Below are positions 1-38,519 of a stretch of DNA of 45,145 bases, one piece after another; the first letter of the stretch is position 1, and each line of letters opens with the position of its first letter. The stretch spans positions 51,967 to 97,111 of the forward strand of contig CAJFCJ010000090.1 of NCBI GenBank assembly GCA_904063045.1. Direction: 5' to 3'. This stretch comes from Dimorphilus gyrociliatus (Eukaryota; Animalia; Annelida). Made by a program: the position numbers and the translations under genes. The notes beneath the pieces are model-generated. The model did not search any database and was not told where the DNA came from. It saw nothing but the letters and a program-made list of their open reading frames with translations.

Positions 1-3000
1 ATGCAGTACTTTTAAAAGGTATTGAGAAACTAAGATATAGACAAAAATACAATAAAAATATCTTATTTAGCCAATGCCACAATCAGCAGTGTATCAGCAA
101 TGAAAAAGTCTGTGACAATGAAATTAATTGTTTTGATTCAAGTGATGAAATATGTTTTCATCAAAATTCTATTCTTCAAATATATACTAAAAGTTTAAAA
201 AACACATCTAACTATCATAACCAGACTAATCCAGAAAATATTTCTTTTAAATACAGATTGCAATTCAAAATTCCAAATAGAGTGTGATAGTTCATGTTTA
301 ACAAAACATAAAATCTGTGATTTTAAAGTCGATTGTTCCAGTGGAAATGATGAAAACATGTGTAAAAGATTTTCAACTGGTTCTAATCCAAATCGAAAAG
401 TAAATTATACAGAATGTTCATTAGAATATGACACTATGAATAATTTAATATCAAAAATAAGATATCCGTATTCATCTTTAAAATTCTGCATAAAATCTAA
501 TTGTTTGAAATCTCAATATAAATGCTTTTATTCTGGGTTTTGTATTAACATTGATAGAGTTTGCGATGGAATTAATCATTGCCTAAATAATGATGATGAA
601 TTATTTTGTGGTTTCTCTCATTTTTATCCTTCTCAGAGAATTTCCAAATATAAAGTCCTCTTTTTTCAGATGATTTTATAGCTCCTGGATTTTTTAAATG
701 CAGAAATGAATCAAGGTATATTTCAAATGCTCAACTATGTAATGGAAAGTTGGATTGCACAAAAGGAAGTGATGAACTTTTCTGTACAACTCCTGAAAAG
801 TATTTCACTAATCTCTGTAAATATTCAAATCCATTTTCCATTTCTTGTATAACAAATGAAAAATTGGTGAATTTCAATCTTGATGAAAATTTTAAATATA
901 TTTCACTTCATGGAAATTTTGTTTTAAGACAAAATCAACATTTTTACAACATTTTTATATTAAAAATCTCATCAAATAATGTGCTTGACAGATGGATGAA
1001 TATTCAATTTCCAAATGTTATCTTTCTACAAATTGTTCATACCATTTCAAAACAGTTTTCAGTCTTTGATAAATTCAAATTATCTTTACTCCAACACATG
1101 AATCTATCAAATAATCCAATTGACAAATTGGATGATATTTTCAAATTTGAAATGAATAATCTAATGACTTTAGATTTATCATCAACAAACATAGAAAATA
1201 TAAAAAGAGTTCATTTCAGACATTTAACCAGATTGCATCTTTTGAAAATGCAAAATTGTGTGTTAAGAAATATTGAAGAAAATTCATTTCAGTTTTTGAA
1301 GAATGTGAAATTTTTGTATATGAAAAGAACAAAATTTCCAGTAAAATTCATTAAATATTTTGCAATGCATATGTTAAAATTAAAAATAATTGAAAGTGAA
1401 AGTTTTCAATTGTGTTGTTTGGTTGAGAAATCTTTGTCAAAAGTGGAGAAATGTCAACCGAAGCCTTCTGGTTTTTTAACTTGTCACAACATAATTCCAT
1501 CAGTTTTTTTAAGAATAATCTTTTGGATAATTGGAATTGTTGGTTTTTTTGCTAATGTCATTTCTTTTTTTATTATCATTTTTTCCAAATTGAAATCGAA
1601 ATTGTATAGAATTTGTTTGTCAATTGGAGATTTGTTGACAGCAGTCTATATTCTTTCTATTGCTGTTGCTGACATAATTTTATCTAGTACAAAATTTTTA
1701 TTAAATGAAGAAGAATGGAGATTCAGTAACACCTGTTCAATTCTTGGCACAGTTTTAACATTTTCTCTATTGCTATCATTATTTTCAATTCTGTGTCTGG
1801 CAATTGAACGTTTCGAAATAATTCTATATATTCTAAGAGAACCTTTAATGCTAAAATATAGAAAACAAATCTTAATTTTTGGGATTATGGTGATTGGAAT
1901 TATCTCCAACATGCCAATTGTTTTTTACAAGGTTGATACTTTTTAGTTAATATTTTTTTTTAATTTTGCAAATTACTTTCCAAAATCTATTTAGAGTTTT
2001 TATTCAAAATCAACAATTTGTTTCAATATTCAAATTCGAAGTGATAAAAATGAGGGTTCCTTTCACTCATTTATAACATTTGGACTATTGGCTTTCATTA
2101 TATCAACTTTAATATTTGTTTTATATATAAAAATTGTATTAAAAGTGCATTCAAGTAGTTTAACAAAGAAGACTAGATTTTCTAAAAGTATACTATTTAT
2201 TACATTTTCAAATGTTTTATGTTGGTTTCCAGTTTCATTTCTTTGTATGTCAAGTTTATTAAAAAATGATAAAAAACCTTTAATTTTTATATGTTAACTT
2301 TTATTGAAAGCAATTCTGTCAAGATTTGTTGTTTTAAATATGAAAAATAATACATACACCATCTTTTTTATCACATTTATTCCTGCAAATTCCTTAATAA
2401 ATCCATTGATTTTTTGCTTTAATCACGTGGTATATTGTTACAGAATGAACGGTCTAAAAAAAAGAGAAGACAGGTATAATTTTTTTCATGTTTTTTTGTG
2501 AAAACTAATTGATGGACTACTGGCTTTTTTTTTAGAGATAGAGCATTAACATCATTGAAGAATGGCATAACTGAATATTGTATTTTAGATATATAACTTT
2601 TTAAATTTTGAAATAATTGATTTTACTAATGTTTTTTTAAATTTGAACAGACGTAACATTTTTTAATAGAGAATTTAAAACTATTTCATTTTTCTTCTAC
2701 TCAACAAAGAGTATTAAAGTGAAAATTGATAGCAAATTTTTTAAAAATTTTAAATATTTTAAATGTTTTTTTTTTTTGATTAAATGTATTAAATCTATAC
2801 ATGAAAATTCATTAAATGTAGGAATTGATGAAATGGAAAGGTGTTTATATAGTAAAGTAATACACGTTTTTGTTTTATTTTTTTTAATTTTTATTTTTTC
2901 ATAAGATTCTGACAAACATTTTAATTTTTAACAGAATGAAATGTACTACTTTTATTGTGAAAAATTTTTAATGTTAACTGAGGAAGGTTCTGCTATAGAC

Positions 3001-3057
3001 ATGTTCAATTATGGAAAATTTGTTGAAGATTGTCTTAAAAAGAAATTTGAATTTTAA
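1..3057 (+). CDS. Gene A: GRL101-like LGR GPCR (LDLa-LRR-7TM) with C-terminal kinase-like tail; multi-exon, 5' part lies upstream of the window
   Basis: LDLa modules (CISNEKVCDNEINCFDSSDE, CINIDRVCDGINHCLNNDDE, LCNGKLDCTKGSDELFC), LRRs (LQHMNLSNNPI, LMTLDLSSTNI), TM1-4 in ORF 750..1946 (AIERF), TM5-6 (SNVLCWFP), TM7 (NSLINPLIF). Hand-spliced introns include 611..681, 1932..1996, 2474..2535, 2580..2650 and 2857..2934; stop TAA at 3055..3057. Confidence 0.85.
2536..3057 (+). CDS. Gene A C-terminal pseudokinase-like domain (exons 2536..2579, 2651..2856, 2935..3057)
   Basis: Spliced translation ...FLIKCIKSIHENSLNVGIDEMERCLYSK/NEMYYFYCEKFLMLTEEGSAIDMFNYGKFVEDCLKKKFEF*. All junctions are GT-AG and phase-compatible, and the segment is homologous to the tails of B, C and D. 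Confidence 0.7.
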
Positions 3058-3467: not shown

Positions 3468-6400
3468 ATGAATAAAATGTACACAATACAAGAAATCATT
3501 ACAATTTCACTTCTCTATATATTTGTATTTGAATATTCAAATGGAGTACAAAACTTAAGTTTTGTACAATTTTATGAAGATGATATTTCATATAAAACTC
3601 TCATATTTGGAAATGCTAATAAAACAGAAGACTTCCGAATTAATTTTGATGAAAGCTCTTCATCTTTCTTTGAAAGATCTAAAATCTTGTTTTGTAGAGA
3701 GAATGGCTATGACTCATCTATGGCAAAAATTTCTTTTACATTAACAAAAGAAATTGAAAAAGCAAGAAAACTTGTAAAAGCTATACCGTGCTGTCAATTG
3801 TATGTATTAATAGGAAAATAGAATATTTAAATAGTTAGCAGGTCTTGCTGTAGAATTTATATTTTTAAAACAAGCTTACAATAATAAAGCTAAATCTTAT
3901 AAATGTAGAATTGAAAAATTTTTCGGGATTTTAAAAATAGGTTAACAACTCCTAATGCAGCTAAAGATAAGATATATAGTGGTCGACAAAAAAACCCGGA
4001 CACCATAATTTCGATAGGCCAAACATTATAAATCTTTTTCACCAGCAAAAAAGATTTTTTTTTTTATTTTTCAGGTATAAAATAGTAGTTTAAAGTTTGA
4101 TATATACACGAGTTTCTTTTAAATATCATTTAGATAAGTTTTCACATAAGTGTTTTTGTTTTCTTATTATCCATTTTTTGATGATTTTTTTTCTTATTTG
4201 GCCATGAGACATTATTACTTGGACGATGGTTTGGGGATTAATATTTTTATTATTTTTGAATATGACAACCCTCATTTGCAATACATTTGCTAATCCTACC
4301 TCCCATCCCTGCATATAAACTTGGTAGCAAGTCAGGATTTTGACTTATAACCTGGTATGAACATTTTTTTATTTTCTCCCACAGTTCATCCCCAGATTGA
4401 AATTGTGCACCATTGTAAACTAAATTTTTTGTCAGGTGTCACATATTTTCTATAGGGCTCAGGTCAGGGCTCTTTGCTGGCCAATCAATTGGATTGATAC
4501 CATTCATTCGAAAGGCCCTCCTAGTTGCTCTTGCTGTGTGGCAGCCTGCTTTATCTTGTTGGAAGATGTAATTCCTGCCCATTTTGAGTGATATCTCTTC
4601 AATGACAGGAAGAACATCTTCCACAACAAAACAGCTATAATTTTGGGCAGTCAATTTTTGACTTATCCTCCAAACTTCAAATACCCATCTCAGGTTATTA
4701 ATCCCCACACCATCACTCCACCTCTTCCCATATTTTTGGTGACTCTAAAATTTTTTTCACCATCTTTTGTCCATGTCCTGAAATCATCAGGCCCACTCAG
4801 AGAGAATCTGGCCTTGTCTGTGAAAATCACTCTTGACCAGTCCAGATTTTCAGCAATTGTTTTGAGGCAGTATTCTTTTCTTCTTGCACAATCCTTAGGT
4901 GGTGTGAGATCAACTCTCTGTCTAATCCTTTTATAATTATAATTTTGCCTCTTCAGCTCTCTCTGAATGGTCTTGAGACTCACATTGACCTCTAATTCTG
5001 CTAAAACCTTTCCTGCTGTCACCCTTTCCTTATTTCTCTTAAGTCTCTTTACTATTCTTTTTATCCTCACTATGTCTCTTTCTGTTAGCTTCTTTGTACA
5101 ACCCCTGTTCTCTTGTTGTGGTGGCTCATATCTCAAAATGTCACTAATGGTAGATGGTGCCATTCCCAAAGCCCTTGCAGTTGCCCTAATTTTTCCCAAT
5201 TCTTTGTATTTCTTAAATACTAGATTCCTAACCTCTTTACCCCATGCCATAATTAAGTAAATAGAATTTAAAGTTAACTACAGTAATTAAAATAGATCAA
5301 AAGTGATTACTTAACTTTGAAAATTAGTTTGGTCAAAAAAAATTTCTGTTTGGGATGTTAATTTGAATCCAAAACTGGAAACAAAATGGATGTGCTGTTA
5401 ATAACGTCTCATGGCCAAATAAAGAAAAAATTAATTAAAATTAGTAAAAAATTTTTTCCTATTAATATTCACAAATATGATAATTTTGTCATTTTTTTTC
5501 AATATTACAGAAATATAATCCTTTATCAATGTAAATTGCCTAAAAAAACTAATTTCAAACTAAAAAACATATTTTTGGGGTGATTTAAAAATTGGCCTAT
5601 CAAAATTTACAGTGTCCGGGTTTTTTAGTCCACCACTATATATCAAAGAGGGAAAGAGAGATGGAGAAAGAGAATCCTTTAGGTAGGCCTAGAAAAGTTT
5701 GAATGTTTTACTATTTTGAAACAAAATTAAGGCCAAACTAAAAAAAAGACTGCATATTTTTTGTCATTTTTTAAAAATATAGTTTTAGTAGTAAAGTTTC
5801 CTTTCAATATCTCCAAAAAACACTGAAAATTTTTGAACCAATTCACATTAAATATTCTTATTTCTTTAGCGGAAGTGAAATATATTTAACAAAATTTAAC
5901 CTTATTCTGCAATGTTTTCGAAAAAACTCTTCTAGTAAATTAAATATGATTTTGAATTATTTTAAAGAAGTTTCTTTTTCTAATAGTCTTTATTTTTTTA
6001 GTTATTTTTGGAATGAGAAACAAATTGAATTATTATTACTTAATTTTAAAAATGAAAAATGACTACTTTGCTATTGAATCATCAGTTAAAAATAGGAAAT
6101 TTTTGTGTAAAGGAATACAAATAATTGTAAATTTTATGGATACAAAAATTTTGAATAAAAGAATATTTTTAAAATTAAATCAAGAAAATGGAACCAAAAG
6201 CATTTTTAATCAAAGTAAACTCTACAATTTCAACAATATTCTTCATTGTTTCTATGATGAAATTGATGGTAAAATTTAAACCTTTTTCTTTATATTTTAA
6301 AAAGTTTATTCTCTTTTTTACAGAAATACAAATTCTTTATGATTTAAATATAAAAGATTTAATTAATATTGTTCCACAAATAAATTCCAAAATTATGAAT

Positions 6401-9400
6401 GAGTTAACCATAATCCATTCAAAAATTTATGGATTTAGAATATTACTATTTGGAAAATCAAATGTTTCAGTTGTTGCAGCCTACAAGTTCATTTGTAATT
6501 CAATGTCAAAAATGTTTGGTCCATTTTTCAAGGGTTTTCTTCAATCATTTCCCCATCGAAGTGTAAATATACCTTTAAAAAAATTTACAATACAAACAAT
6601 TTCTTCTCAAAAATATCTCTTTTTAAGAATTTAATTTTAGAAATTGTTTCTTATAAAATTAATGATGGCACATTACAAATTTATGAAGCTATGATTTTTC
6701 CATATCTGTCAAGAGATCCTGGTTATATTTCAAAAACAAAGATACTTTGTCAAAGAAAACCAAGTTATTCATTAGGTAAATTTTTCTATTTATGGGTAAA
6801 GGTTAAATATGTTTGATTTTGTCTTGAAAAATTTGTTTAGAAAGTGATGTAAGCTTAATCATTTAAATTTTCGAATTTAATAGATATTTAATAAGTTAAA
6901 AATTTTCAATTTTATACCTAATTTGCCTGATCCCATTTATCTCATTAATAAGAAAATCAGTATAATTACTTATAATAATTTAACAGATAGAAAATTGTAT
7001 TTTTTGAATAAAGAACAAAAATTAATAAACTTAAAATCAAATCATATATTAAGAAATTTTACTGGAAGACTTGTTGTTTATAAAAATGAGATGTTTTTTA
7101 TTATAAAACTTTTAACATCAAAAAGCGTTAATTTAATTTGTCAACATTTTGGCTTTAACAATGGAAAAATTTCAGATAATTCACAAAACAATCTTGTTAG
7201 AGATAATTATGTAAACAATCAATTTACAGCTCTTCTATCACATTTCTATTGTAATAATAATGAAACAAAGATAGAAAATTGTCAAATTGTTGATGGAAAG
7301 TATGATGGAAAACAAAATATTCCAAAAAATTTAACATTGAATCAAAAATTCTTTAGATATAGCAAAAGACAACTCTTTAAATATGGAGGAGTAGATATCA
7401 CCTGTAAAAATAAATTACTTATAGAAGAATGTATCTTGTTTTTAAAATTAAAAAAGAAAATCTATTTAAACTATACATTTTTTTCTTTTATTTAGACAAA
7501 AATGAATGTGAAGCAAATGATTCATTCATATTTGAAAATACTTGTTATAAGGTGTTTGCCATTGACAATCGCATTCCACTTTATAAAATGCAACAATATT
7601 GTTATGATAGAAATATGACTTTATTTGATTTTCCTTCCAATCAGCAAATCTTTCTAACATTTTATCTTCAATTTTTAGTATATTTTAAAAGACATAAAAC
7701 ATTGGATGATTTTTTTCCAACCCAACACAGCATAAAAATTTATACAAGTAAGAAAGTAATGATTTGAAATTCAATCTTTTATATATAAAAATTATTCTTT
7801 TTAAATGTAGAAGTAAACCAAAAAAAGTACAGAAAAAAATTAATTACTGTAACAACAAGCAATTATGATATTTCTTATCTGTCAATTGCTGAAATTCTTC
7901 AAAGAGAACAATTTAAATTAACAGTTTCAAAATTGAAATACGAAATGAAATTATTTGAAAGTTATTTTACACAAGAGATTACAGATGAATGCATTTCCTT
8001 AACATCTAAAATAGATAAGTAACTATACACTGTATATAGAAAACAAATTTTTTCAACAAAGTCCTACAATAGCGTACGAACTTTTTTCCAGGTCAAAAAG
8101 AATAGTTGATCAAATGCTCTATACTACTCCTTGTAAATATAGAACAGATATTGTTGTTTGCCAAAAGCAATACTTTTTGGGTAAAAACTAACTGCCTTGA
8201 AAGAGAAAGTGTCCATATTTTTTCAAATTATAAGTTATTTTTAAAAAGCATACTGTAAAAAAATAATATATACAAGTTAAGTCACAAAGTTAATATGGTA
8301 CGAGTAGCTAAATCAAAACCAAAAAAATTTTAGTTTCTAAAAAAAAAACACAAAATATATATGGATATTTTCTGCGGAAAAAGGATATTTTCGTGGCATG
8401 AACTAATGCATCTTTAATTTACTAAAAAAGAGGCTTATCAATTTCATGGCTTCTTTCATCTAAATAATCAAATTGAGAAATGTTTAGATCAACATTTCTT
8501 TTGTAATAAAAGTAAAATTTGTATAAATTCAATTTATGTTTGTGATGGTGTTAATGATTGTCTGTTTGAGGAAGATGAAGATCAATGTGAATTTTACACC
8601 GAAACCAGATTTCATTGTTCAAATAACAAAGAAATAATTAGTTATTCACTTCTATGTGATTTTGTTCCTGATTGTGATGATCAGTCTGATGAACTGCTCT
8701 GCTGTAAGCAAATTAATTTTCAAATCATATCTTGGTTTTTCTTACAAGTATTTAAATTCTTATTGTTTCAAAAGATTACAAGCTATGCAGTACTTTTAAA
8801 AGGTATTGAGAAACTAAGATATAGACAAAAATACAATAAAAATATCTTATTTAGCCAATGCCACAATCAGCAGTGTATCAGCAATGAAAAAGTCTGTGAC
8901 AATGAAATTAATTGTTTTGATTCAAGTGATGAAATATGTTTTCATCAAAATTCTATTCTTCAAATATATACTAAAAGTTTAAAAAACACATCTAACTGTC
9001 ATAACCAGACTAATCCAGAAAATATTTTTTTAAAAACACAGACTGCAATTTAAAATTCCAAATTGAGTGTGATAATTCATGTTTAACCCGCAACAAAAAA
9101 TGTGATTTCAAAGTTGATTGCTCCAATAAGAAAGACGAAGACAATTGTTTACAGGAACTAAATTATAGTAATGAAACACAACTGTTAAATTATACAGAAT
9201 GTTCATTAGAATATGACACTATGAATAATTTAATATCAAAAATAAGATATCCGTATTCATCTTTAAAATTCTGCATAAAATCTAATTGTTTGAAATCTCA
9301 ATATAAATGCTTTTATTCTGGGTTTTGTATTAACATTGATAGAGTTTGCGATGGAATTAATCATTGCCTAAATAATGATGATGAATTATTTTGTGGTTTC

Positions 9401-11862
9401 TCTCATTTTTATCCTTCTCAGAGAATTTCCAAATATAAAGTCCTCTTTTTTCAGATGATTTTATAGCTCCTGGATTTTTTAAATGCAGAAATGAATCAAG
9501 GTATATTTCAAATGCTCAACTATGTAATGGAAAGTTGGATTGCACAAAAGGAAGTGATGAACTTTTCTGTACAACTCCTGAAAAGTATTTCACTAATCTC
9601 TGTAAATATTCAAATCCATTTTCCATTTCTTGTATAACAAATGAAAAATTGGTGAATTTCAATCTTGATGAAAATTTTAAATATATTTCACTTCATGGAA
9701 ATTTTGTTTTAAGACAAAATCAACATTTTTACAACATTTTTATATTAAAAATCTCATCAAATAATGTGCTTGACAGATGGATGAATATTCAATTTCCAAA
9801 TGTTATCTTTCTACAAATTGTTCATACCATTTCAAAACAGTTTTCAGTCTTTGATAAATTCAAATTATCTTTACTCCAACACATGAATCTATCAAATAAT
9901 CCAATTGACAAATTGGATGATATTTTCAAATTTGAAATGAATAATCTAATGACTTTAGATTTATCATCAACAAACATAGAAAATATAAAAAGAGTTCATT
10001 TCAGACATTTAACCAGATTGCATCTTTTGAAAATGCAAAATTGTGTGTTAAGAAATATTGAAGAAAATTCATTTCAGTTTTTGAAGAATGTGAAATTTTT
10101 GTATATGAAAAGAACAAAATTTCCAGTAAAATTCATTAAATATTTTGCAATGCATATGTTAAAATTAAAAATAATTGAAAGTGAAAGTTTTCAATTGTGT
10201 TGTTTGGTTGAGAAATCTTTGTCAAAAGTGGAGAAATGTCAACCGAAGCCTTCTGGTTTTTTAACTTGTCACAACATAATTCCATCAGTTTTTTTAAGAA
10301 TAATCTTTTGGATAATTGGAATTGTTGGTTTTTTTGCTAATGTCATTTCTTTTTTTATTATCATTTTTTCCAAATTGAAATCGAAATTGTATAGAATTTG
10401 TTTGTCAATTGGAGATTTGTTGACAGCAGTCTATATTCTTTCTATTGCTGTTGCTGACATAATTTTATCTAGTACAAAATTTTTATTAAATGAAGAAGAA
10501 TGGAGATTCAGTAACACCTGTTCAATTCTTGGCACAGTTTTAACATTTTCTCTATTGCTATCATTATTTTCAATTCTGTGTCTGGCAATTGAACGTTTCG
10601 AAATAATTCTATATATTCTAAGAGAACCTTTAATGCTAAAATATAGAAAACAAATCTTAATTTTTGGGATTATGGTGATTGGATTAATCTCTAATATACC
10701 AACTATGCTTTATAAGGTTTTTTTGAAATTTTTTTGTTTAGGAATAGTCTCAACCATTTTTTTTGTACTTATATTAGAGTTTTTATTCAAAATCAACTAT
10801 TTGCTTTAACATTCAGATTAGAAGTGACAATGCTGAAGGATCAGTTTATTCATTATTGACATTTGGTCTTTTAGCATTTTTCATAAGTTCACTTATCTTT
10901 GTATTATATGTAAAAATAGCATTTAAAGTAAATTCAACCAGTTTAACAAAGAAGACTAAATTATCCAAAAGTATTTTTTTTATTACATTTTCAAATGTTT
11001 TATGTTGGTTTCCAATCTCATTTCTTTGTATGTCAAGTTTATGAAAGCCATAGATAACTTTAAAACTTTTAATCTAATTTTTTTTCACAGCACTTTTATC
11101 AAGATTTTTTGTTCTGAATATGAAGAATAATATATACATTGTCGTTGTTGTAACACTTATTCCTATGAATTCGTTGTTAAATCCACTTATATTTTGTTTT
11201 AATCACTCACTCCATCTGTACAAAATGAATGTTGCAAGAAAAAGGGATAAAAGGTGTTTTTTTATTGATTTTAAATAGTTGTTAGAATCGAATGTTTTTT
11301 TATTTTAATATTTTTGTGCTGTAGGCAATTAATTACTTCTACTTTGAAGAACAAAGTTATAGAGCAATGTATTTCATTCCCCTTTTTTGGTTTTTGTTTG
11401 TTTTTTAGAATTAATGGTTTTTTTTGAAAAATCAGATGTAAACTTTTTCAATGGAGGAATAAAGACAATATCATTATTTTTAATTTCTTCTAAGAAGAAA
11501 ATTAGATTCAATATAGATATGAATTTTTTCAAAAATTTCCAATACGTTAAATGTTTTACATTTGTTATAAAATTCATTAAAACTGCTCATGAACATTGTC
11601 TTTCCATTGGTGATGAAGATCTTGAAAATTCATTATATTTTATAGTAATAATTTTTTCTTTGTTTAAATTAATAATGTTTCTTTTAAAATCAAGTTCTTT
11701 TCTCTTTTTTAGAATTCACAATATTTTTTTTATGGTGAAAAATTTTTCCTTTTAACAAAAATAAGATCAACTTCAGATATTTTAAATTATGGTAATTTTG
11801 TTAGAAAATCCCTGCAAAAAAGGATTGTTTTTGTTAACAAATTTAGTAAAGGAGAAATTTAA
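3468..11862 (+). CDS. Gene B: complete GRL101-like LGR GPCR (signal peptide, SRCR-like repeats, CTL-like, six LDLa, LRR, 7TM, pseudokinase-like tail)
   Basis: Hydrophobic leader at 3468 (ITISLLYIFVFEYSNG); SRCR-like motifs (FCRENGY, FTGRLVVYKN...LICQHFGF); CTL-like ECEANDSFIFENTCYKVF...MQQYCYDRNMTL; LDLa at about 8480..9570; LRR/TM1-4 ORF 9535..10809; TM5-6 10856..11044; TM7 NSLLNPLIF. Intron 1 (3800..5869) contains a Tc1 element. Stop at 11860..11862. Confidence 0.85.
3977..5638 (-). mobile_element. Full-length Tc1 (DD34E) DNA transposon with a disrupted transposase, in intron 1 of gene B
   Basis: TA target duplications at 3975-3976 and 5639-5640; terminal inverted repeats tagtggtcgacaaaaaaacccggacac / gtgtccgggttttttagtccaccacta; inner inverted motif ttggccatgagac / gtctcatggccaa. 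Transposase runs 5250..4250 on the minus strand (TDKARF, QQDKAGCH, DLSPIE; 34 residues between D and E) with a frameshift near 4700 and a premature TGA at 4439..4441. Confidence 0.93.
8785..10683 (+). repeat. Near-identical duplicate of 1..1898 (gene A/B shared tract)
   Basis: 1..~240 matches 8785..~9025 (one substitution seen, 214/8998). 401..1898 matches 9186..10683 with identical translation and apparently identical intron. A diverged LDLa patch lies between the two blocks. Confidence 0.92.
11325..11862 (+). CDS. Gene B C-terminal pseudokinase-like domain (exons 11325..11368, 11436..11644, 11713..11862)
   Basis: ...FTFVIKFIKTAHEHCLSIGDEDLENSLYFI/NSQYFFYGEKFFLLTKIRSTSDILNYGNFVRKSLQKRIVF...; same exon phases as gene A. 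Confidence 0.72.
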
Positions 11863-20164: not shown

Positions 20165-21305
20165 AACTTCATAAAAATTGGAACACCTCGAATTTTGAAT
20201 AGGCCAACATATAAAACATGTTTTTCACTAAGAAAAAAGATATTTTTTTAATTTTTTTTGCATAAAATGTTAGATTAAATTTATATATAATTTTCTTTCA
20301 AATACGATTTAGGTAAGATTTTATATCATTTTTTTTGTTTATATTATGTACTGTTTTATTGATTTTTTTTTCTTATTTGGCCACACTTCATAATAATTGG
20401 AACACCAACAAAAATGTTCCTATTATTCCTACTTTTGAATCTGAGTACCCTCTTTTTTGATGCATTGCCTAATTCTATGCCGCATTCCATCATATAGACA
20501 TGGTAACAACTCTGGCTGCTCTTTTATAAGCTCATAAGAGCATTTTTTGATTTTTTTCCACAATTTGTCCTCTGATTTGAATTGTGGACCATCATATACC
20601 AGGTTTTTGGTAAGGTGCCACATGTTCTCGATTGGGCTGAGGTCAGGGCTCTTTGCTGGCCAATCAAGAGGATGGATATCATTCATTTGAAAGGCTCTTT
20701 TAGTCATCCTTGCCATGTGGCACCCAGCATTATCTTGCTGGAAGATGTATTTCCTCCCCATTTTTGCCTCAATCTCTTCAATAACAGGGAGGACATCTTC
20801 CACAATAAAACAGCTGTAATTTTCAACATTAAGCCTTTTCCTTATCCACCAAATTTCGAATATTCCATCATAGGTTATTAGTCCCCAGATCATTAATCCA
20901 CCTCTGCCAAGGTTTTTCATCACCCTGAAATCTTTTTCGCCATCTTTGGTCCAGGTTCGAAAATCATCTGGCCCACTCAGTGAGAATCTAGCCTTGTCAG
21001 TGAAAATTACTTTAGACCAGTCTAGATTATCATTGATCATCTGAAGACAGCAACTTTTTCTCCTCTTACAATTATTTGTTGTAAGATCAAGTGTTTGCCT
21101 AACTCGCTTATACCTAAATTTTTGTTTTTTTAGCTCTCTCTGTATGGTTAATAGGCTGACATCTACATCTAACTCTTTCAAAATTTTTCTTGCTGTCACC
21201 CTCTCCTTATTTATTTTCATTTTCTTTATAGCCCTCTTCATCCTGCCTATATCTCTCTCTGTAAGTTTCTTTGGACAACCTCTATTCTCCTCTTCTGGTG
21301 GTTGA
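20165..21305 (-). mobile_element. 5'-truncated Tc1 (DD34E) element nested in the MULE
   Basis: ORF 20429..21241 has an open DDE domain (TDKARF, QQDNAGCH, DLSPIENMW) homologous to the 3977..5638 element. Only one TIR is present, with direct repeats acttcataa(a/t)aattggaacacc near 20167 and 20385; the other end abuts the MULE TIR. Confidence 0.88.
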
Positions 21306-21627: not shown

Positions 21628-22671
21628 TTATGTAGACACTGTTGAGATTGTTGATGTTAATCCCTCTGACTTTTTATTGGAAAAGAGCAAACCAAGTTCC
21701 TTTCTAAACTTTTCACCAGTCGCGCAATAAATATAGAAATTAATGGCGCTATTACTGACAGCAAACGTATTAAAGATCCTACTAATAGTTAATAATTTAT
21801 TAGTTTCTTTAATACTAGCTTCCTGCCATATTCCAGAGTATTGTAAATACCATGATATAATACCAACTGGTAAAGTTGCAATAATCAAATATGTCGACAC
21901 AAAGAGAAGCATGATTGTCATCTGAGTTGATTTTTTTTCATTTTTTGACATATTATTTTGAACCATTGCCGATCTTTCTTTTTTTGCTTTAATCAATGCA
22001 TTTATAATAAGAACATTGAATATTGTAATAATTATAGCTGGTAGAATAGTGTAAAATAGAGTATCTAATATCCCAAGAACTTTATATAAAAAGTACTCAA
22101 AGCTTGAATTTATACCTTGGCAGTATACTGAAGTGGACCATTTATCATTTGGATCTACTGTTACGTAAACTTTACCAAAAGAATAGAATAGGAAATGATA
22201 GAATATTGTAAAAGTAGATACTAGGCAAAAACAAACAACCTTCGCCCGGAAATTGGTTGATATGGTTTTAGACTTTGTTGGAAACAGTACATGAATACTC
22301 CTGTCTACAGTCATAGCTGCAACTAGCCAACTAGCTGTTGATGCACTCCAAAATGTTAAATAGTATGCAGTAGCGCAAAAGAAATACTTCAAAATCGACT
22401 GACTAACAGTGAAGAATCCGAGGAGTGAGTTTAAATTTAATATAATATTTGAAAATAATGTTAAAGTATCAAACACTGAAAGATATCTGACAAAGATTGA
22501 TAACGTTGTTTTATTCATTGATGGTCTACTGAAAACCAAAAAGCTGAGAACGTTTCCAACTGTTCCGAGAACCATGAAAAGCAATTGCAAAACATATACT
22601 GAGATATAAAGAGCCTTAGCCTCAGGGAACATTGATTCTCCCTTCAATATAGAATCTGTAACATTGTCCAT
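21628..22671 (-). CDS. Intronless rhodopsin-class GPCR of the FMRFamide-receptor-like/orphan peptide receptor type
   Basis: Single ORF with seven hydrophobic segments, GNVLSFLV, MTVDRSIHVLFP, ATLPVG and NSAINFYIYCATGEKFRKEL; first ATG at 22671 (MDNVTDS, N-glycosylation sequon). Confidence 0.92.
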   Translation of the reverse strand: MDNVTDSILKGESMFPEAKALYISVYVLQLLFMVLGTVGNVLSFLVFSRPSMNKTTLSIFVRYLSVFDTLTLFSNIILNLNSLLGFFTVSQSILKYFFCATAYYLTFWSASTASWLVAAMTVDRSIHVLFPTKSKTISTNFRAKVVCFCLVSTFTIFYHFLFYSFGKVYVTVDPNDKWSTSVYCQGINSSFEYFLYKVLGILDTLFYTILPAIIITIFNVLIINALIKAKKERSAMVQNNMSKNEKKSTQMTIMLLFVSTYLIIATLPVGIISWYLQYSGIWQEASIKETNKLLTISRIFNTFAVSNSAINFYIYCATGEKFRKELGLLFSNKKSEGLTSTISTVST

Positions 22672-23701
22672 GTTTTTTTGTTTTACTCTACCAAGTGAGA
22701 AGAACAACAGTTTAAATACTAAAAAGACTATCTATAAAAATAGACTTTTATCAAGATCCTTTTATTACAAAACATTAAAAAAATCATAATCTAACGTAGA
22801 CTACTCCCAATTTTAATTTTTACTTATCTTTAAACAATTAGATAGAAATTTTGAGTATAAATCAGCCACTAGTTCTAAACAAAGAGGCTAAAGGTCGTAC
22901 TGACTGAGGACTTTGAAGTTGGCCACAAATAACTGTATTAAGGAATTAAAAGTGTTTGAATTATATATATTGTTAGCCAAAGTACAAAATCTACAAAGTA
23001 GATATAAAATAAAAAAAAATTTGATCAGTTCTTGTCAATTAGTTTGTTCAGTTGTCCATTCATACCCACTCTTATTATATGTATTGATCTATACTTCTTT
23101 GAACTCTCATTCTTCCCTCATTCGTGCAAAATGCAAAAAGCTATAGTGTTGGTTTTGATTAATAATCGTATTAAGTCATTATCCCTCTCTCTTTTAAAAT
23201 TCTTAGCCATAATCAAGATTCTAAAAGTAGAACAATAGTTGATTGGATTTAGTAAAAAAAATTGGGTGTGTCATTATTGTCAAAAAATCTAAAAGTTTGC
23301 GAGAAAACAGCCCAGTGGACTGAAGTTTAGGTTGTGGTTTTGAGCACTTTTAGGTTTAGAATAATTTTAATTTGAATATTCGTCTGTTGATGTAGGGCTG
23401 AACTAAGGCTTAGCAAGCATAAAGTGGAAAGTATCTTGTTAACTATTGGCTGCTTTCCGCCATACCCTTTAAATTTCAAATTTTACATATATAAATATTT
23501 AAATCTTATTCACCACACCCTCTTTAGCATTCTATTTATGTTATTCTCTTTGACAAGCATTTAATAAGAAAAGATAAAAATATTAGAAGGCAACATGTCC
23601 ATATAATCATGACAAAATGCTGAAAAGTGTTTTATAACAAACTAGACAATATTTAATTTTTTTGTCATTTACAGCATGTAGATTGATATTTATTCTAAAC
23701 T

Positions 23702-30545: not shown

Positions 30546-33500
30546 TTAAATGTTATCAGTACCATCCATAATAACGTTTGGTCCAATATCGATATCCTCA
30601 ACATCCGAATCGTTGTGAAAAAATGTTCTGGAAAACGAGACGTTTCTCTGAAAGAACTCAACACCTATTTCCTTTACGTAGCACGATTCAAAAGGATTAT
30701 TTCGAATATTTAATTTTGAAAGCATTTTTAATTTCGTAACCGCCATTATTAATGGAAACGCTTGGCGATTGTCTAAACTGCAAGATGCTATATTGAGCTC
30801 TTTCAAACACTTGCAGGTTTTACCTAATTCATTAAATATTTGGTCGCTATTTTCATTAAGTTTATTAGCTGATATATTTAAATGATTTAACAGAGGCGAT
30901 TGGCTTAAAACTGTTGCAAGATATGGTGTAATCTTCTCATCAAAACCACAACTTGAAAAGGATAAAAATTCAAAATTATTACCCCTAGAGGCGAGACTCC
31001 TGAAAATTTCTTCTCCTAATTTAACACCAAAATCATTAAAAGATATATTTAATTTAGATAAATTGGATTGATTTTTTAACGACTCAGCAATCAATAATCC
31101 ATTATTTGAATTTAAAAAACAGTTACTAATATCCAAGTTTGTCAAATTTGTACAAACTGTTGAAAGTGCTTTTAGAAGATTCTCTCCAGTGCTATTTTCA
31201 AATTTTATATCTGATATAGTTAATTCCTGTAGGTAGGTTTGTTTTTGAATTGCTTTTATTAGAAAATGAATTGCAGTCTTATTAAGTAAACAATGACTGC
31301 AATTCAACTGCATTAGAGAGCGACAATTGGTGGATATAACTGCAAAAAGTGATTTCCCCATTTTTCTATTATCTATATCACTCATTGAAACATTTATATT
31401 TGTCAATCCTCCAAATCCTCTTGTGGTATTCAAATCTGAATTTTCTCCACTAATAGAGAGACTTAAATGACAATTTTCCAGATTTAACTCTCTAATCTCT
31501 TTGCAGTTTTCCCAAATAATCGTCAAAAATGATTGATTTTCGATTTTCGACGAAAAATCATTATGGGATAGGTCGAAAGTTTCCAGTCTTTTTAACCTTT
31601 TAACCCCTTCCAATAGATTCTCATGAATTGTGGAGTTTAAATTGCAGTTGGACAAATTGAGTAGTTTACAATTATCCATATCTTTAGAAATATATTTAAA
31701 TATTGTATTTCCGACTGTATTTCCTAATTGATTATTCGAAAGATTTAAGCTTTCCAGTCGCCACAGTTTCTTTAAGGCAACAGTTAAACTCTTGTTAATC
31801 TGTTCATCAAATTGGCAAGACCCAAAATCCAATAGGGCAATCATTTTGCAGTTGTTTGCCAGAGTCTTCAAAATAGAATTTCCAACTTCTGATTCCAGTT
31901 TATTTTCCTTTAAAATTAGCTGGGAAAGGTTTGTTTGTTGCGAAATGACATTGTTCAACATTAGTCCGTGAATACTACTCAAACCACAATCAATTAGTTT
32001 TAAGCACGTTAATGTTCTGCAATCTGTAGAGAGAATTTTAAATATTTCATACTTTTTCTTATCATTAAAATCCTTATTACTGGAAATTTGAATTGTTTTT
32101 ATTGATGACAAACTCTTTAAAGCCTGTTTGCAAATAGCAAACTTTTGGTCATTTTTAACGAAAAGTTCTAAATTTAAATTTTCAAAATTAATTGAATTTG
32201 TATTGAAAATTTCAAAAAGTTTTTTAAATGGTATTTTTCTATGGAGAAGAGAAGGAGAATCTTTCAAAAATGTATTGACAAACTTTAAAATGGAGTTTAC
32301 TCTTTGAAGATTAAATTCTTGACTATTAATGAATTTGTTCAAGTTAAGTAAATGCCAATTGTCCAAATAATATTGACTAGAATTTGAATTGAGCACTTGA
32401 AGGAAATTTAAATTTGATATGATGTTTGAAATTTCCATTAAATGCTTAGATTCTAATTTATTGCCAAATATATAAAATTCTAATGGTTTTGCAGTTGAAT
32501 TGAGCATCTTCATTAAAAAATCTATAATTCCAGTATATTCAAATTTGTTATTGGAAATATTCAACACTTCCAGATGAGTTAAACAATCTAAAAGAGATTT
32601 AAAATGCTGAAGGAAATTGTCTGTTAGATTGCAGTTTGAAATGTTGAGTAGCTTTAATCTATTTAAAGTAAAATATTTTTCATCAATGTAAATACCATTT
32701 AAATTATTCATAGATAAATCTAAACTATCAATCTTCACCAGTTTATCATTGTTTGGGAATGCTTTATAATCTAATTGGCAGTTTGTAAAACTTACTATTC
32801 TTTTGTCAACTTTCTTTAAACTCATGTAGACAAATAATCTCTTTACTATTGATTGATTTAGGTCATTGTTAGTTATAACTACTTCCTCCAATCTATCAAA
32901 TTCTTTTAATAGCTCGAACAAATCTTTTTCAGCTATCTTCTCTTCCGTGCTATCTTCATTCTCTCCATTTGATATCTTATTCAATTTGAATGAAATCAGT
33001 TTGCCTTTTTCAACACATTTTAATATGTTAAAAATTGCTGTTTTGTTGAAATTCTCTCCAAATTCTAAACTTTCTATCTTGCTTATTACTTTTAAATGAA
33101 AATTCGATAAAATATTGCCAAAATTGTCAAAGATAAATTTCACTTCCGGTAGAATGACGCTCTTCAACTTTTTGCCTAGGAATAGGCAGTTGATAAATGA
33201 AAAATCTATAGTTTCTTCAATTATGGCTTTATTCATTTGGAATCTCTTTAGTTTTCCATTTTTACTGAGAAAATTTTTGAAAATGTCACCTTTAATTGAC
33301 AAACAACAATCGTTGATAATAAAAGAGATAAGATTCCTTGAATTTTTTAAAATAGAACTCAAAACAATTTTTGTCAGTTGAGGATCATTTCCTGAAAAAT
33401 TAATTTTTTCCATTTCTGTTGTTTGGCTAAAAAATTGCTGTAAATTGTCGTATTCATTTGAAGAGAAGTTGCAGAAAGATAAATTGATGTTCTTCAGCTT

Positions 33501-35693
33501 TTTTTTATTTTTAATAAAGTTGCTTAGAGATTCAAAACTTCCATCTGAAGAAAAATGATTAAGTGATATTACATCAAGAAGAGAAAGAAAAGAAAGAGAG
33601 AGTAGAGAAATGAGAGAAAATAGAGAGAAAGGAGAAGATAGAAAACAGGGAATATTTTCATTATATTATACTTTTTACTTACCCAAAAATTTGCAGTCAG
33701 ATAATTGCAGTGTTTTCAACTTGTTTAGGAATTGAAATATTACGACATTCTTTATTGTAAAAATGATTCCGCAATCATCTAAAGACAATTCTTCAAGTTG
33801 GAAACTTTGTTCAGTACTATTGACAATGTTGCCAAATACTTCAACGTCAAGTTGCACATGCTTTAGACAAAGTTTCTTGAGCTTCTTAAAGGCAAATAAC
33901 ATTTCCGGAATTATGTAAAATGTCAATGAACCCTGCATTCCTCCAATAATTCTGATCTCCTCCAGATAATTTCTAAGCGTCACTTTTGCAGTTTGAAGAA
34001 TCTCTCTTAAATTGAAATTGACAAGTTCAAGAGATATCTTTGTAACTTTAATATTCAAGAATAAAATGATTATCTTCCATACATTTGTTGATAAGAATTC
34101 TCCTCTCTGCCTCAATTGTCTGGTTTTTCTTTTAATGATATTCCGCTGGGCATCGCTAACAGTCTCCACAATTTCTAAGATATTTAGATTTTGCGAAAGA
34201 AAGATAAAAAATACCTCAGCATCTAAATATTGCAGAAATTTGAAAATATTCAACATTTTTACTGGATTAGTGTGTTTTTCAATGATGTTACCCAATTCGT
34301 ACGCCTTCTCTTTGAAATGACCTTTCGAGTATGTACTCAACTTTCCACTTCTCATCCTTCTAATAAAAAAAATAATATACTCTGCAGCGAAATATTCCTT
34401 GAATTTTTCATTTAAAAATCGTAAATTTTCACTCCCAGTTTCTTTAATTAGAATACCCATTTTTTCTCCAATTTCGATATTATCGCCCTCTATCAACTCT
34501 TTTCCAAGTACAATATTCAGGAATGAAGCGCAAGATATTTGTCTTCTCACTTTGGTAAAATTCTCTTTGTATCTCTTCACTAAAACCTTTAGGAAACATC
34601 TAAAAATAGAATATCCATTGATCTGGCTAAATTGCTGTCTACTTTCATAGACAATTGCAGTTAAATAGGCTATTAGAGGGCATGAACAAGCAGTATACAA
34701 ATTTCTTTCTTTAGATAACCATTTCATTAGATTTTGTACCATTTTACTATTATTCTTTGAATGTTTGTAAAAAAATTCCACCATTTGAGCTTCATTAAAT
34801 CCTTTTATCTCATAAATGTACTCAAAAGTTTGCCCAACTTTTCTCATATCTTCACCAGTCCCTATCCAAGCTATTACTGGATAATCAATCTTATCTTCAA
34901 TCTCTAATATATCCAAAAATGGCTTTAAATGATCCTTTAACTTTAGTTTGTCAATATCAATTTGATCTATAAACAAAACTGGTAAAAAGTCTTCATATAT
35001 TGGAGATTCTGTAAGAAAATATTTAAGTAGGTCCTTAGTTATAGATGTAGATTTATTGAAATTTTGATCTAGAATTACATCGAAGAAATCCTGACACGAC
35101 TCAACTTTATCAAAGTTTATTGTGAAGAATATGCAATTGTTAAAGAAATTGCTATCAGTTGCCCACAAATGAAGAATCCTTTGGAGAAGAACAGTTTTTC
35201 CCATACCAACGGCGCTGTGAACAAGAATTCTTAAAGCGGTTTTAGTTTTTCCATCTGTGGATTTCAGCTCTGTAAGAGGCGATAAGATATTTTGAAAGTG
35301 TTCACCAATAAATGACGACGCCTGACAAGTACTCTTAAAGATATCAATTGGTGTAAAGATACTTTCAATTCTCTCAATTTTTGTCGAATGTCCACAAGTT
35401 ATTGTACTCAATTTATGTTTCTTATACAATCTCATTTCCAATTTGAGCATAACCCAAATATTGGATATCTTATTAGCCAACTGCTCATAACGACTTTTGC
35501 CCAATCTGTAAAGGATATCTGTCAATTGATACTCAGTAGAGATTTTCGTTTGGAGAAAAGTATCAAAATTTTCAAAAAATAACGCTTTATCCCTCGTTTC
35601 ACAACATTGCGAAAGACAAGCGCAAAAGAACGCCCTATCGCCCTTAAGGGTGAGTATATCTTCTTTAAAGAACGAAATTACTGGATTTATCAT
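30546..35693 (-). CDS. Large NLR-like protein: death-fold-like N-terminus, NACHT, winged-helix/HD2 and long RI-type LRR array (two exons, about 1670 aa)
   Basis: Walker A SAVGMGKT, Walker B LFIDQID, CSCPL, FLNEKFKEYFAAEYI in ORF 33675..35744. Intron 33682..33545 (g/gtaagt...ttcag/at) joins in frame to the 955-aa LRR ORF 30546..33413. First ATG at 35693. Confidence 0.88.
33575..33645. repeat. AG-rich low-complexity tract in the NLR intron
   Basis: agaagagaaagaaaagaaagagagagtagagaaatgagagaaaatagagagaaagg lies within intron 33682..33545. Confidence 0.7.
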
Positions 35694-37018
35694 TGGATTG
35701 GCAATACTTGCGAGAGCAAATACAAAAAGGTCTATTGGCAACAATCAATATGCAAACAAACAGATATTGTGACAAACAATAGAATTGCTAATGAAAAAAC
35801 TGGCAAAGAGCAAGCGCTCTTCTCTTGAATACCTATCTTTTATTGTTAGAGAACTCTATTGATAGAAGAATATGCAATCATCTTATGAATATATATTGTC
35901 CTAGTTTATTACCAATTTTTTTAAGTAAAATAAAATATCCTTTCATACTAGTTTGTCAAAATTTTCAATAGATGAATCAGTTTTCTAAAGAGAAAGAAAT
36001 TGAGTATTATTTGTTAAAAAAAGCTGGAAAACTACTCTGAAAAGATTTTGTTAGCTTATCCTAAGTGGTCAAAATGGCTATTAATTTATGAATGAAAGCA
36101 AAAATTTCGATTTTTTAAATAAATAATAGAGTCACCGACAAATGTTTTTAAACATTTTCATTTTTATGAGCAGCATGTCGCAAACTCAGTGAAGATGAGA
36201 GCAAAATTCCGATCACACCATTAAATTTTATTTTCAAGTGCATTCAACTAAACTTAAGACAAAATGGTGAAGTTCATGTTCAGATTCCTCCTCTACACCA
36301 TATACAGATAGGGCTACAACCGATTGGGGGACCGCGAGAAGTGTCCTTTGAACACATAAAAGATAGGATAATTGTTTTTATAAAACATATATGTCACCTT
36401 GAACGGGGCGGGGAGGAAATGTCCCTGTAGGCTGAAGTTTAGGCTAAGATTTTGGGCATTTTCATTTCGATATTTTTCAATTCATATATGGCACAACTGA
36501 GGGTTAGGATGTATAAACTGCAAAGAATCTTGCTCAATGGGGAGTCAGGGTTTGGGTAAAACACCAAAAAACGGGTCATTTTCTTTCATACTCACTTTTA
36601 AATAAATTTTCCTAACTCTAGAAATGCCCAAAAATTTACCCTTACGATATATAAATCATCACTGCTTCACTCTAATCACCTGAGAAGATCAATCTGAAAA
36701 CAACCTCAAGTTGGAGCAAGCCTTCTACTCTTCAAAATTAGAAGCTGGTAATTTGGCAACTAGCTATTACAAACAATCTTCTCTGCCATTGAACTTGTAT
36801 ATTATTACTTGCCTAAGTATTTCATTTTGAATGAACCATTTAAATGAAACATTTGTTCGAGTAGAACCAGTATTGTTGTAATATGCAAGCACATAAATTG
36901 GCTAAGCAGAAACAGTACAATAGATTTAGCATGAGTATATAAGAAAAGATCATGCCTGATTATTGTTTGTTATGTAAACTAACTCTGTGTATACAATACT
37001 GCTTTAGTACTAAAAAAA

Positions 37019-37590: not shown

Positions 37591-38519
37591 CTAAAAAAAG
37601 TCTTCAACTTGAAATAAAAAAGTATAAATAACCTTGGATTCAATTAATATCAATTAGAGTTCATAGCTCTATTTATTAATTAATTTTAATATAGAAATTA
37701 AATTGTACACCAACCACCAAATTTAAAATCTTTGTTTCTGTGGCCAAGACATTGTCCTTATTTTTTCGTACAGCAATATTTAAATAATGTATATTTCAGT
37801 AATTTAATGAATTAAGCGTTAAAGTAAATAGCATGTAAACCTAATACTGAAATTTTTACAAAAGTTTTAAGTACATGGTGAACTTTCCAAGTAAATTCTC
37901 TCCAAAGTGAAAATTACTTGCAATTTCTTGCTTGGACAGGGTTAGTTTGTATTATAGTTAAAGATTATGGTTTTAAATTTTGATTAGAAGGTTTGAAAAA
38001 CATTTGTTTATAGATATCAATACTAATTTACAGCTTAATAAAAGTAGTTCACAATCAAAGTAGGTTTTATGAAAAGAGGTTGTTTTAAATCCAGTCATTG
38101 AGGTAGACTTTGGTTTGTTCAATGGTAAGTGGATAATAGACAATCTAACCCTTACTAATTCCACAGAATAAGATTTTTTGTATTACTACATGATAGACCT
38201 ATTAATCTGAATGTAATTTCTAACGCACTTCTCTCATTATTGTTAGATAACCACCCATTTTTAGTCATGTTTCCTCCATATACGACGTAATGGTTTTGAA
38301 TTATTATAATTAGTGTCCTAAAACTAGTACACATTTTTTACTTTTCTTTTCTACTCTTTTCGTGATTAAGATAAAAACTTGCAAATTTTCCAAAAAAGTT
38401 TTATTCATAATGAATTTAAAATATATGCTACAAATATTAATTTATTTCATAACAATGTCATAATACATTAAAAAACTAGAGTTCTTCTGGGTATATTTCG
38501 CTTATATTGGCCTGTCCTA

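Follow-up and report, generated by a model that had tools for sequence, protein, structure and literature searches.

A predicted, truncated kinase-homology tail on LGR/GRL101-like receptors of the annelid Dimorphilus gyrociliatus

Fusions of a GPCR (G-protein-coupled receptor) to a kinase have been published as the GPCR-TKL/K and GPCR-TK proteins of choanoflagellates and sponges (eLife 2025, PMC12716839) and as the GPCR-bigrams of oomycetes and amoebozoans (PMC6033456, PMC5784254). Among metazoans, such fusions have been reported from sponges only (PMC12716839). Here, we describe a stretch of 45,145 nucleotides (nt) from the annelid Dimorphilus gyrociliatus (GenBank assembly GCA_904063045.1, contig CAJFCJ010000090.1, positions 51,967 to 97,111 of the forward strand; hereafter the window), in which four predicted genes, A to D, resemble the leucine-rich repeat-containing GPCRs (LGRs) of the GRL101 type. 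We consider it likely that all four receptors carry, after helix 8, a tail of ~125 amino acids (aa) that is kinase-derived, truncated and catalytically dead, that this tail is an old feature of the subfamily, and that it serves as a non-catalytic module.

The original prediction, made for gene A from its DNA, knew of no earlier description of such a fusion. A literature search with incomplete coverage returned no paper on an LGR/GRL101-type or bilaterian GPCR-kinase fusion and none pairing GRL101 with a pseudokinase, and Veenstra's GRL101 analyses do not mention a kinase-like tail. Novelty can therefore be upheld, within that search, for LGR/GRL101 receptors and for bilaterians, but not for the fusion of a seven-transmembrane (7TM) receptor to a kinase as a class, which is already known; moreover, RefSeq proteins of other phyla already display this architecture without comment, with amphioxus and hemichordate entries showing both a 7tm_1 and a kinase match.

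Tail exons in gene A and its paralogs

The window has a eukaryotic composition of 28% G+C, with introns of 60-140 nt. It begins within gene A, leaving that gene incomplete at its 5' side. The features of gene A, including its transmembrane helices (TM), LDLa repeats and leucine-rich repeats (LRRs), are as follows:

1..640, + strand: LDLa-repeat exons (Pfam Ldl_recept_a on 244-678; LDLa-like Cys patterns in the frame translations; borders approximate)
669..1931, + strand: exon with the last LDLa, the LRR region and TM1-TM4 (donor AAG/GT, phase 0; Pfam Ldl_recept_a, LRR_8 and 7tm_1)
1995..2244, + strand: exon with TM5-TM6 (donor T/GTATGT, phase 1; 7tm_1 profile positions 134-228, match on 1995-2294)
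2311..2473, + strand: exon with TM7 (NPLIF) and helix 8, ending in REDR (donor AG/GTATAA, GT at 2474-2475, phase 2; homologous exon in B, C and D)
2499..2501, + strand: read-through stop, giving a short-tail product if the 2474 donor is unused (open reading frame, ORF, 2304-2501)
2536..2579, + strand: micro-exon of 44 nt, coding a linker behind helix 8 (entered in phase 2 and left in phase 1)
2651..2856, + strand: predicted kinase-homology exon with the pre-alphaE region, alphaE ending in an invariant His, a degenerate catalytic loop and beta7 (phase 0 donor; assigned from alignments A4/A5 and from hhalign to the tails of relatives)
2935..3057, + strand: terminal exon with a predicted beta8 and activation-segment remnant, then D-M-F-N-Y-G as the alphaF motif and a basic end (stop at 3055-3057)

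The Pfam LDLa signal in gene A covers 244-678 and 669-1943, and leucine-rich repeats lie immediately N-terminal to the 7TM domain (LRR_8, LRR_4). With LDLa repeats, LRRs and a rhodopsin-type 7TM domain, gene A is, by its predicted domains, an LGR/GRL101-like receptor; it is called GRL101-like after its nearest annotated relatives (7tm_1 positive), which carry the names GRL101-like or RXFP1. The three tail exons join in frame into a predicted tail of 124 aa, with 143 aa from NPxxF to the stop. The donor at 2474, the three exons at 2536..2579, 2651..2856 and 2935..3057 and their common frame had all been proposed in the original prediction; coordinates and splice sites check out and recur in four paralogs, and the mechanically called ORF 2304-2501 agrees with the read-through stop that it had placed at 2499..2501.

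Searching the window with pieces of gene A by tblastn returned three further LGR-like genes, B, C and D. Their extents, and the TM7 exon and tail exons of each, are:

9454-11862, + strand: gene B (ectodomain region 3468-9570)
~26166-23702, - strand: gene C
~41864-39359, - strand: gene D
11093-11253, 11325-11368, 11436-11644, 11713-11862, + strand: TM7 exon and tail of gene B (two tail exons 52% and 47.5% identical to those of A in amino acids)
24490-24350, 24258-24215, 24129-23918, 23854-23702, - strand: TM7 exon and tail of gene C (GT..AG, phases 2/1/0)
40191-40030, 39889-39846, 39762-39557, 39496-39359, - strand: TM7 exon and tail of gene D (GT..AG, phases 2/1/0)

Each of the four paralogs has three exons after that of TM7, namely one of 44 nt, one of 206-212 nt and a terminal one of 123-153 nt. 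GT..AG borders, intron phases 2/1/0 and a micro-exon length of exactly 44 nt are common to 4/4, and the tails range from 124 to 136 aa. A scan for exon chains of this kind from all 3745 GT sites of the window recovered the four genes and only about four other loci. The first reading of the tail exons, a chance splice chain through an AT-rich 3' region, was excluded by this comparison of paralogs. The other sites of the scan, which we take as chance, lie at 38456-38490 on the + strand and at 42629-42702, 21173-21199 and 5099-5281 on the - strand.

The encoded tails also resemble one another. Smith-Waterman z-scores against 500 shuffles were 40 for A-B, 7.7 for C-D, 7.0 for B-D, 6.5 for A-D and 4.9 for B-C; by the same test, A-C was the sole pair of the six without significant similarity. 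The terminal exon of gene A matches that of gene D by tblastn at E=1.3e-4. Between the tails of A and B, the non-synonymous divergence (0.30) is far below the saturated synonymous divergence (0.71), and the resulting dN/dS of ~0.18 indicates purifying selection on the tail. Protein identity between A and B declines from 98.8% in the LRR-TM4 exon (669-1931 vs. 9454-10716) through 80% in TM5-6 and 63% in TM7 to ~50% in the tail, indicating that the tail records an old duplication. The near-identity of A and B in the LRR-TM4 exon resembles a gene-conversion tract with a boundary near the TM4/TM5 intron.

Similar exons were found outside the window. With a profile of the four tails, the terminal exon was located 3' of LGR genes in related AT-rich organisms, on their contigs L004 (at 5382, E=1.5e-4) and L003 (at 4709, E=7.5e-4), and an ORF at 5047 of L004 bears the alphaE-His motif. 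An earlier plain tblastn of the tails against the related contigs L001-L004 had given no match. Between 3500 and 4700 on L003, a TM5 exon is recognisable and intact TM6-TM7 were not seen before the terminal-exon-like ORF at 4709, so that this copy is maybe a pseudogene or a divergent one.

An alternative is that the three exons lie outside the receptor mRNA: the transcript would end at 2499-2501, and the downstream frames would be pseudo-exons, a rare alternative 3' end or part of another transcript. A short read-through tail is indeed possible in all paralogs, and the nucleotide identity between the A and B exons (0.66) is barely above that of the introns (0.57-0.63). However, open frames, phases, GT..AG borders and the 44-nt micro-exon are kept right after TM7 in four paralogs, the tails are homologous as proteins with a dN/dS well in the range of constraint, annotated relatives have the tail on the same polypeptide, and the tail exons lack both a start codon and any upstream exon that is theirs alone. 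We therefore regard this alternative as very improbable. Taken together, the recurrence in paralogs, the tail homology, the dN/dS and the related contigs argue that the tail exons are real coding sequence joined to the receptor, and on these comparative grounds the predicted exons are confirmed as coding sequence, most likely a part of it. The LGR receptor with a tail that had been postulated for gene A is thus retained, as a coding tail on an LDLa, LRR and 7TM receptor.

Kinase homology through annotated relatives

Relatives were collected by a full HMMER scan with the LRR-TM4 piece, which gave 2616 matches, many of them exon-sized fragments of AT-rich assemblies and others full-length annotated proteins. 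Several of the full-length relatives have 150-260 aa after TM7, and these tails are collinear with those of the window. The tail-bearing relatives are:

Ptychodera flava: P0184, P0189 and P0230
Glandiceps talaboti: P0262
Three Branchiostoma species: the P0227 cluster, named 'GRL101-like' or 'RXFP1'
Stegodyphus: P0224, named 'GRL101'
Dermacentor: P0248

Example accessions for the tail-bearers of Branchiostoma, Ptychodera and Glandiceps are XP_035670292.1, XP_070573185.1 and XP_077989864.1; those of Ptychodera and Glandiceps are entered as uncharacterized LGR proteins. The ectodomains of tail-bearing relatives, including P0262 from Glandiceps, are mosaics, with CUB, C-type lectin and LDLa domains before the LRRs. 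The GRL101-like proteins that the scan recovered from echinoderms (Antedon, Patiria), crustaceans (Oratosquilla, Palaemon), Aplysia and Lingula end in short or Ser/Thr-rich tails, none of which matches a hidden Markov model (HMM) of the relatives' tails.

The tails of several of these relatives can be recognized as kinase-like on their own, three of them passing the Pfam thresholds. Their Pfam matches are:

P0227 tail: Pkinase, 45 bits, E=1.2e-11, profile positions 37-150 of 263
P0262 tail: PK_Tyr_Ser-Thr, 29.3 bits, E=6.6e-7, above the curated cut-off
P0189 tail: PK_Tyr_Ser-Thr, 27.3 bits, E=2.8e-6, above the curated cut-off
P0184 tail: PK_Tyr_Ser-Thr, 20 bits, E=4.7e-4, just under the cut-off

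A 7tm_1 and a kinase match fall on one chain in P0262 (931-1192 and 1246-1323) and in B. floridae P0275 (355-611 and 729-847). The relatives' tails follow a common plan: an alphaE helix with the motif I-A-x-D-V-x-x-x-L-x-F-L-H, a catalytic loop without HRD, DIS, DFS or DFN at the DFG position, a short activation segment and the alphaF motif D-I-x-x-F-G-x-L-V-x-x-L-L, soon after which the protein ends. For a Ptychodera tail, AlphaFold returned a model with a mean pLDDT (predicted local distance difference test) of 75, and of 85-94 over the last 90 residues. When this model was compared with the PDB using Foldseek, the top 50 matches were all protein kinases (among them TYK2, FGFR2, IRE1, IRAK4, RET and LCK), with E values of ~1e-4, query-normalised TM-scores of 0.45-0.5 and 27% identity to IRAK4. 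Queried with the tail from Glandiceps, a word-index search recovered nothing but that tail.

The window tails can be joined to these proteins by profile methods. An HMM of ten relatives' tails scores 15.6 bits on tail C and 11.4 bits on tail D, and 0/500 shuffles reach either value. Aligning the four-tail profile to the ten-tail profile with hhalign gave a probability of 90% and P=1.6e-6; the 78 aligned columns extend from alphaE to the end of the alphaF motif, and the score was 44.3, against a maximum of 21.7 in 200 column shuffles and 10.2 for the reversed alignment. In alignments A4 and A5, the ends of exon 3 of the window genes are in register with alphaE, the His, the catalytic-loop remnant and beta7, and the terminal exons with the alphaF motif. 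The His at the end of alphaE is invariant in 11/11 alignment rows. A profile built from A4, which combines the relatives with the window exon pieces, matches 509 PDB sequences at E<=1, the top 60 all kinases or pseudokinases, led by VRK3, a pseudokinase that it matches at alphaE and the catalytic loop (E=4.2e-5). Gene structure points the same way: in the Glandiceps gene (contig L006), the alphaE exon lies between introns of phases 1 and 0, which agree with those of the window in phase and, to within a few residues, in position. The alphaE helix ending in His and the subdomain IX motif (D-x-x-x-[FY]-G) that had been picked out in gene A alone are thus in register both with the kinase-homologous tails of relatives and with solved kinases. 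By these alignments, the window tails are linked to kinases indirectly, the link being transitive, through the annotated relatives.

Several results weigh against a kinase-derived, functional tail. Taken singly, tails A and B are not significant against the HMM of the relatives' tails and are tied in only via D and C. Pfam searches at E<=10 with each tail exon of A-D singly gave no kinase model, so that the match to Pkinase or PK_Tyr_Ser-Thr expected under the original prediction did not appear, and neither a profile of exon 3 (A2) nor one of the terminal exon (A3) found a kinase among all PDB sequences. In these searches the exons were used separately and not as a spliced protein, which reduces sensitivity. 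AlphaFold gave exon 3 of gene D alone a pLDDT of 64, with a low-confidence helix ending at the invariant His, and a piece of ~125 aa lacking the N-lobe and alphaG-alphaI may not take a kinase-like fold. The splice junctions of the tail exons are predicted here from genomic DNA, the function of the tail is pure inference, and in an unconstrained LRR-TM4 tree the window clade and the annotated tail-bearers are not neighbours.

The tail might then be real and conserved and yet unrelated to kinases, a lineage-specific helical module in which two short motifs look kinase-like by chance. Besides the missing Pfam and PDB matches, this alternative can draw on a language-model look-alike search with the tails that returned nothing kinase-like, and on an hhalign comparison of the window tails with the E. 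coli YegI family (YegI and 120 homologues) that was not significant (P=0.17); the best local YegI match nonetheless fell on alphaE and the catalytic loop, and the family is too divergent, and too uniform as a profile. A motif scan for canonical kinase catalytic motifs found none across the whole window. Against the alternative, the hhalign match to the relatives' tails greatly exceeds its shuffled and reversed controls, three of those tails reach the Pfam cut-offs for kinases and one is predicted to fold as a kinase, the motifs follow one another in collinear order, and intron phases are common to the window and Glandiceps. We find a non-kinase module improbable and prefer kinase ancestry for the tail.

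Remnant domain, possible role and origin

Only ~60 residues separate helix 8 from alphaE in A-D, and the GxGxxG loop, the VAIK lysine and the alphaC glutamate are absent from 4/4 tails. HRD..N and DFG have degenerated in the relatives as well as in A-D, as expected of a dead kinase. The tails of A-D end 12-25 aa after the alphaF motif, and those of the relatives likewise, leaving no complete C-lobe and no alphaG-alphaI. With a coverage from roughly beta4/5 to alphaF, the predicted tail is best called a truncated kinase-homology region, a half-domain remnant and not a full pseudokinase domain, and with the motifs it has it cannot be an enzyme. The dead kinase fold originally proposed for gene A therefore survives in part: kinase ancestry and inactivity are upheld through the relatives, and a whole fold is not, with the ATP elements of the N-lobe absent and the protein ending so soon past alphaF.

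Such a tail would neither bind ATP nor phosphorylate. By analogy with the kinase homology domain (KHD) of receptor guanylyl cyclases, JAK JH2, KSR and VRK3, it would act as a receptor-attached protein-interaction or allosteric module. G-protein or arrestin coupling could be modulated in this way, through a docked partner or through contact between receptors. Judged from these better-known modules, a non-catalytic docking or regulatory role is probably the one that the tail has. Through the truncation, the alphaF helix, which is normally buried, is left amphipathic and basic in the window copies (e.g. L-V-K-K-I-L-Q-K-R), suggesting a new surface for a partner, another receptor chain or the membrane.

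It could be argued that the tail is instead a decaying relic of an ancestral GPCR-kinase fusion, translated and with no function of its own. The tail evolves fast (A and B share ~50% identity there vs. 99% in the LRR-TM4 exon), its catalytic motifs are all lost, and it is shorter than the tails of hemichordates and amphioxus. Decay fits poorly, however, with the retention of the tail across several phyla, related species and four old paralogs, with one end point throughout, a few invariant positions (His, Gly, D..[FY]G..L.K) and a dN/dS well below 1. We give the relic little credence and favor a retained, non-catalytic module.

The occurrence of the same tail on GRL101-like receptors of hemichordates, amphioxus, spiders and ticks suggests an old feature of one LGR subfamily and not a local accident. 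In the LRR-TM4 tree (104 rows), the annotated tail-bearers form one group, and the window genes fall within a 67-row clade of AT-rich assembly fragments. Constraining the tree to unite the tail-bearers with the window clade improved the likelihood by 13.9 units, and the constrained tree was not rejected by the approximately unbiased (AU) test (p-AU 0.80), so that a single origin is compatible with the data. Composition bias may influence the LRR-TM4 tree. For the LRR-TM4 exon, dozens of relatives at <50% identity exist only as exon-sized ORFs in Logan and ENA AT-rich assemblies, pointing to a very large, lineage-specific and unannotated expansion.

A bolder possibility, which we consider rather unlikely, is that the tail goes back to a hybrid, of stem-bilaterian or older age, between an LGR/GRL101-type 7TM receptor and a tyrosine-kinase or TKL-type domain, which decayed to an alphaE-alphaF module surviving in hemichordates, cephalochordates, chelicerates and the AT-rich lineage. 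According to one proposal, IGF-like peptides have GRL101 as a second receptor beside the insulin receptor tyrosine kinase (PMC8286064). Were the hybrid real, its relic would physically connect the LGR and receptor tyrosine kinase arms of insulin/relaxin-type signalling, and GPCR-TK fusions would reach beyond sponges and choanoflagellates into Bilateria.

If confirmed, the non-catalytic tail would represent an unrecognised bilaterian signalling architecture, a 7TM receptor with a built-in kinase-homology module; it would provide a marker for classifying orphan GRL101-like receptors and a testable handle on how these receptors couple to downstream partners. A subfamily of LGR-type hormone receptors in deuterostomes, arthropods and Dimorphilus gyrociliatus would then bear a conserved, shortened, dead kinase module. 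Gene finders that halt at the read-through stop after TM7 would miss the tail in AT-rich genomes.

Other features of the window are:

4439-5250, - strand: Tc1/mariner-type transposase remnant (HTH_Tnp_Tc3_2, DDE_3), split into overlapping ORFs within the gene B region
20432-21241, - strand: Tc1/mariner-type transposase remnant (HTH_Tnp_Tc3_2, DDE_3)
21631-22707, - strand: intronless 359-aa rhodopsin-family GPCR ORF (7TM_GPCR_Srw, 7tm_1), between LGR paralogs
30549-33413, - strand: 955-aa ORF without a family match
33678-35744, - strand: 689-aa NACHT-domain ORF, adjoining the 955-aa ORF

Comparison with known systems

Like the GPCR-TK, GPCR-TKL/K and GPCR-bigram proteins, the window receptors would have a 7TM domain and, after it, a kinase-type domain in a single chain, as judged from the predicted gene model and the annotated relatives. 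Those proteins, however, carry a complete and presumably active kinase on unrelated 7TM families, whereas the window receptors are LGR-type rhodopsin receptors with a kinase part that is truncated and, by its motifs, dead. The KHD of receptor guanylyl cyclases, JAK JH2, KSR and VRK3 are likewise non-catalytic regulatory or scaffold modules derived from kinases, but they are complete bilobal folds, of which the window tail would represent about half.

Among LGRs, the canonical GRL101 receptors (Lymnaea type; arthropod LGR5) and RXFP1/2 likewise combine LDLa, LRRs and 7TM and belong to the same LGR branch. The GRL101-like proteins of echinoderms, crustaceans, Aplysia and Lingula differ from the window receptors in that their tails lack kinase homology. 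The LGRs of Branchiostoma, Ptychodera flava and Glandiceps talaboti are like the window receptors in architecture, with LDLa (plus CUB or C-type lectin), LRRs, a rhodopsin 7TM domain and a truncated kinase-homology tail that ends past alphaF and has degenerate HRD and DFG motifs. Their tails are longer (150-260 aa) and better preserved, some passing Pfam kinase thresholds, and the amphioxus tail retains the alphaC-beta5 region. In contrast, the window tails are shorter, strongly AT-biased in composition and undetected by Pfam, and they include the extra 44-nt micro-exon.

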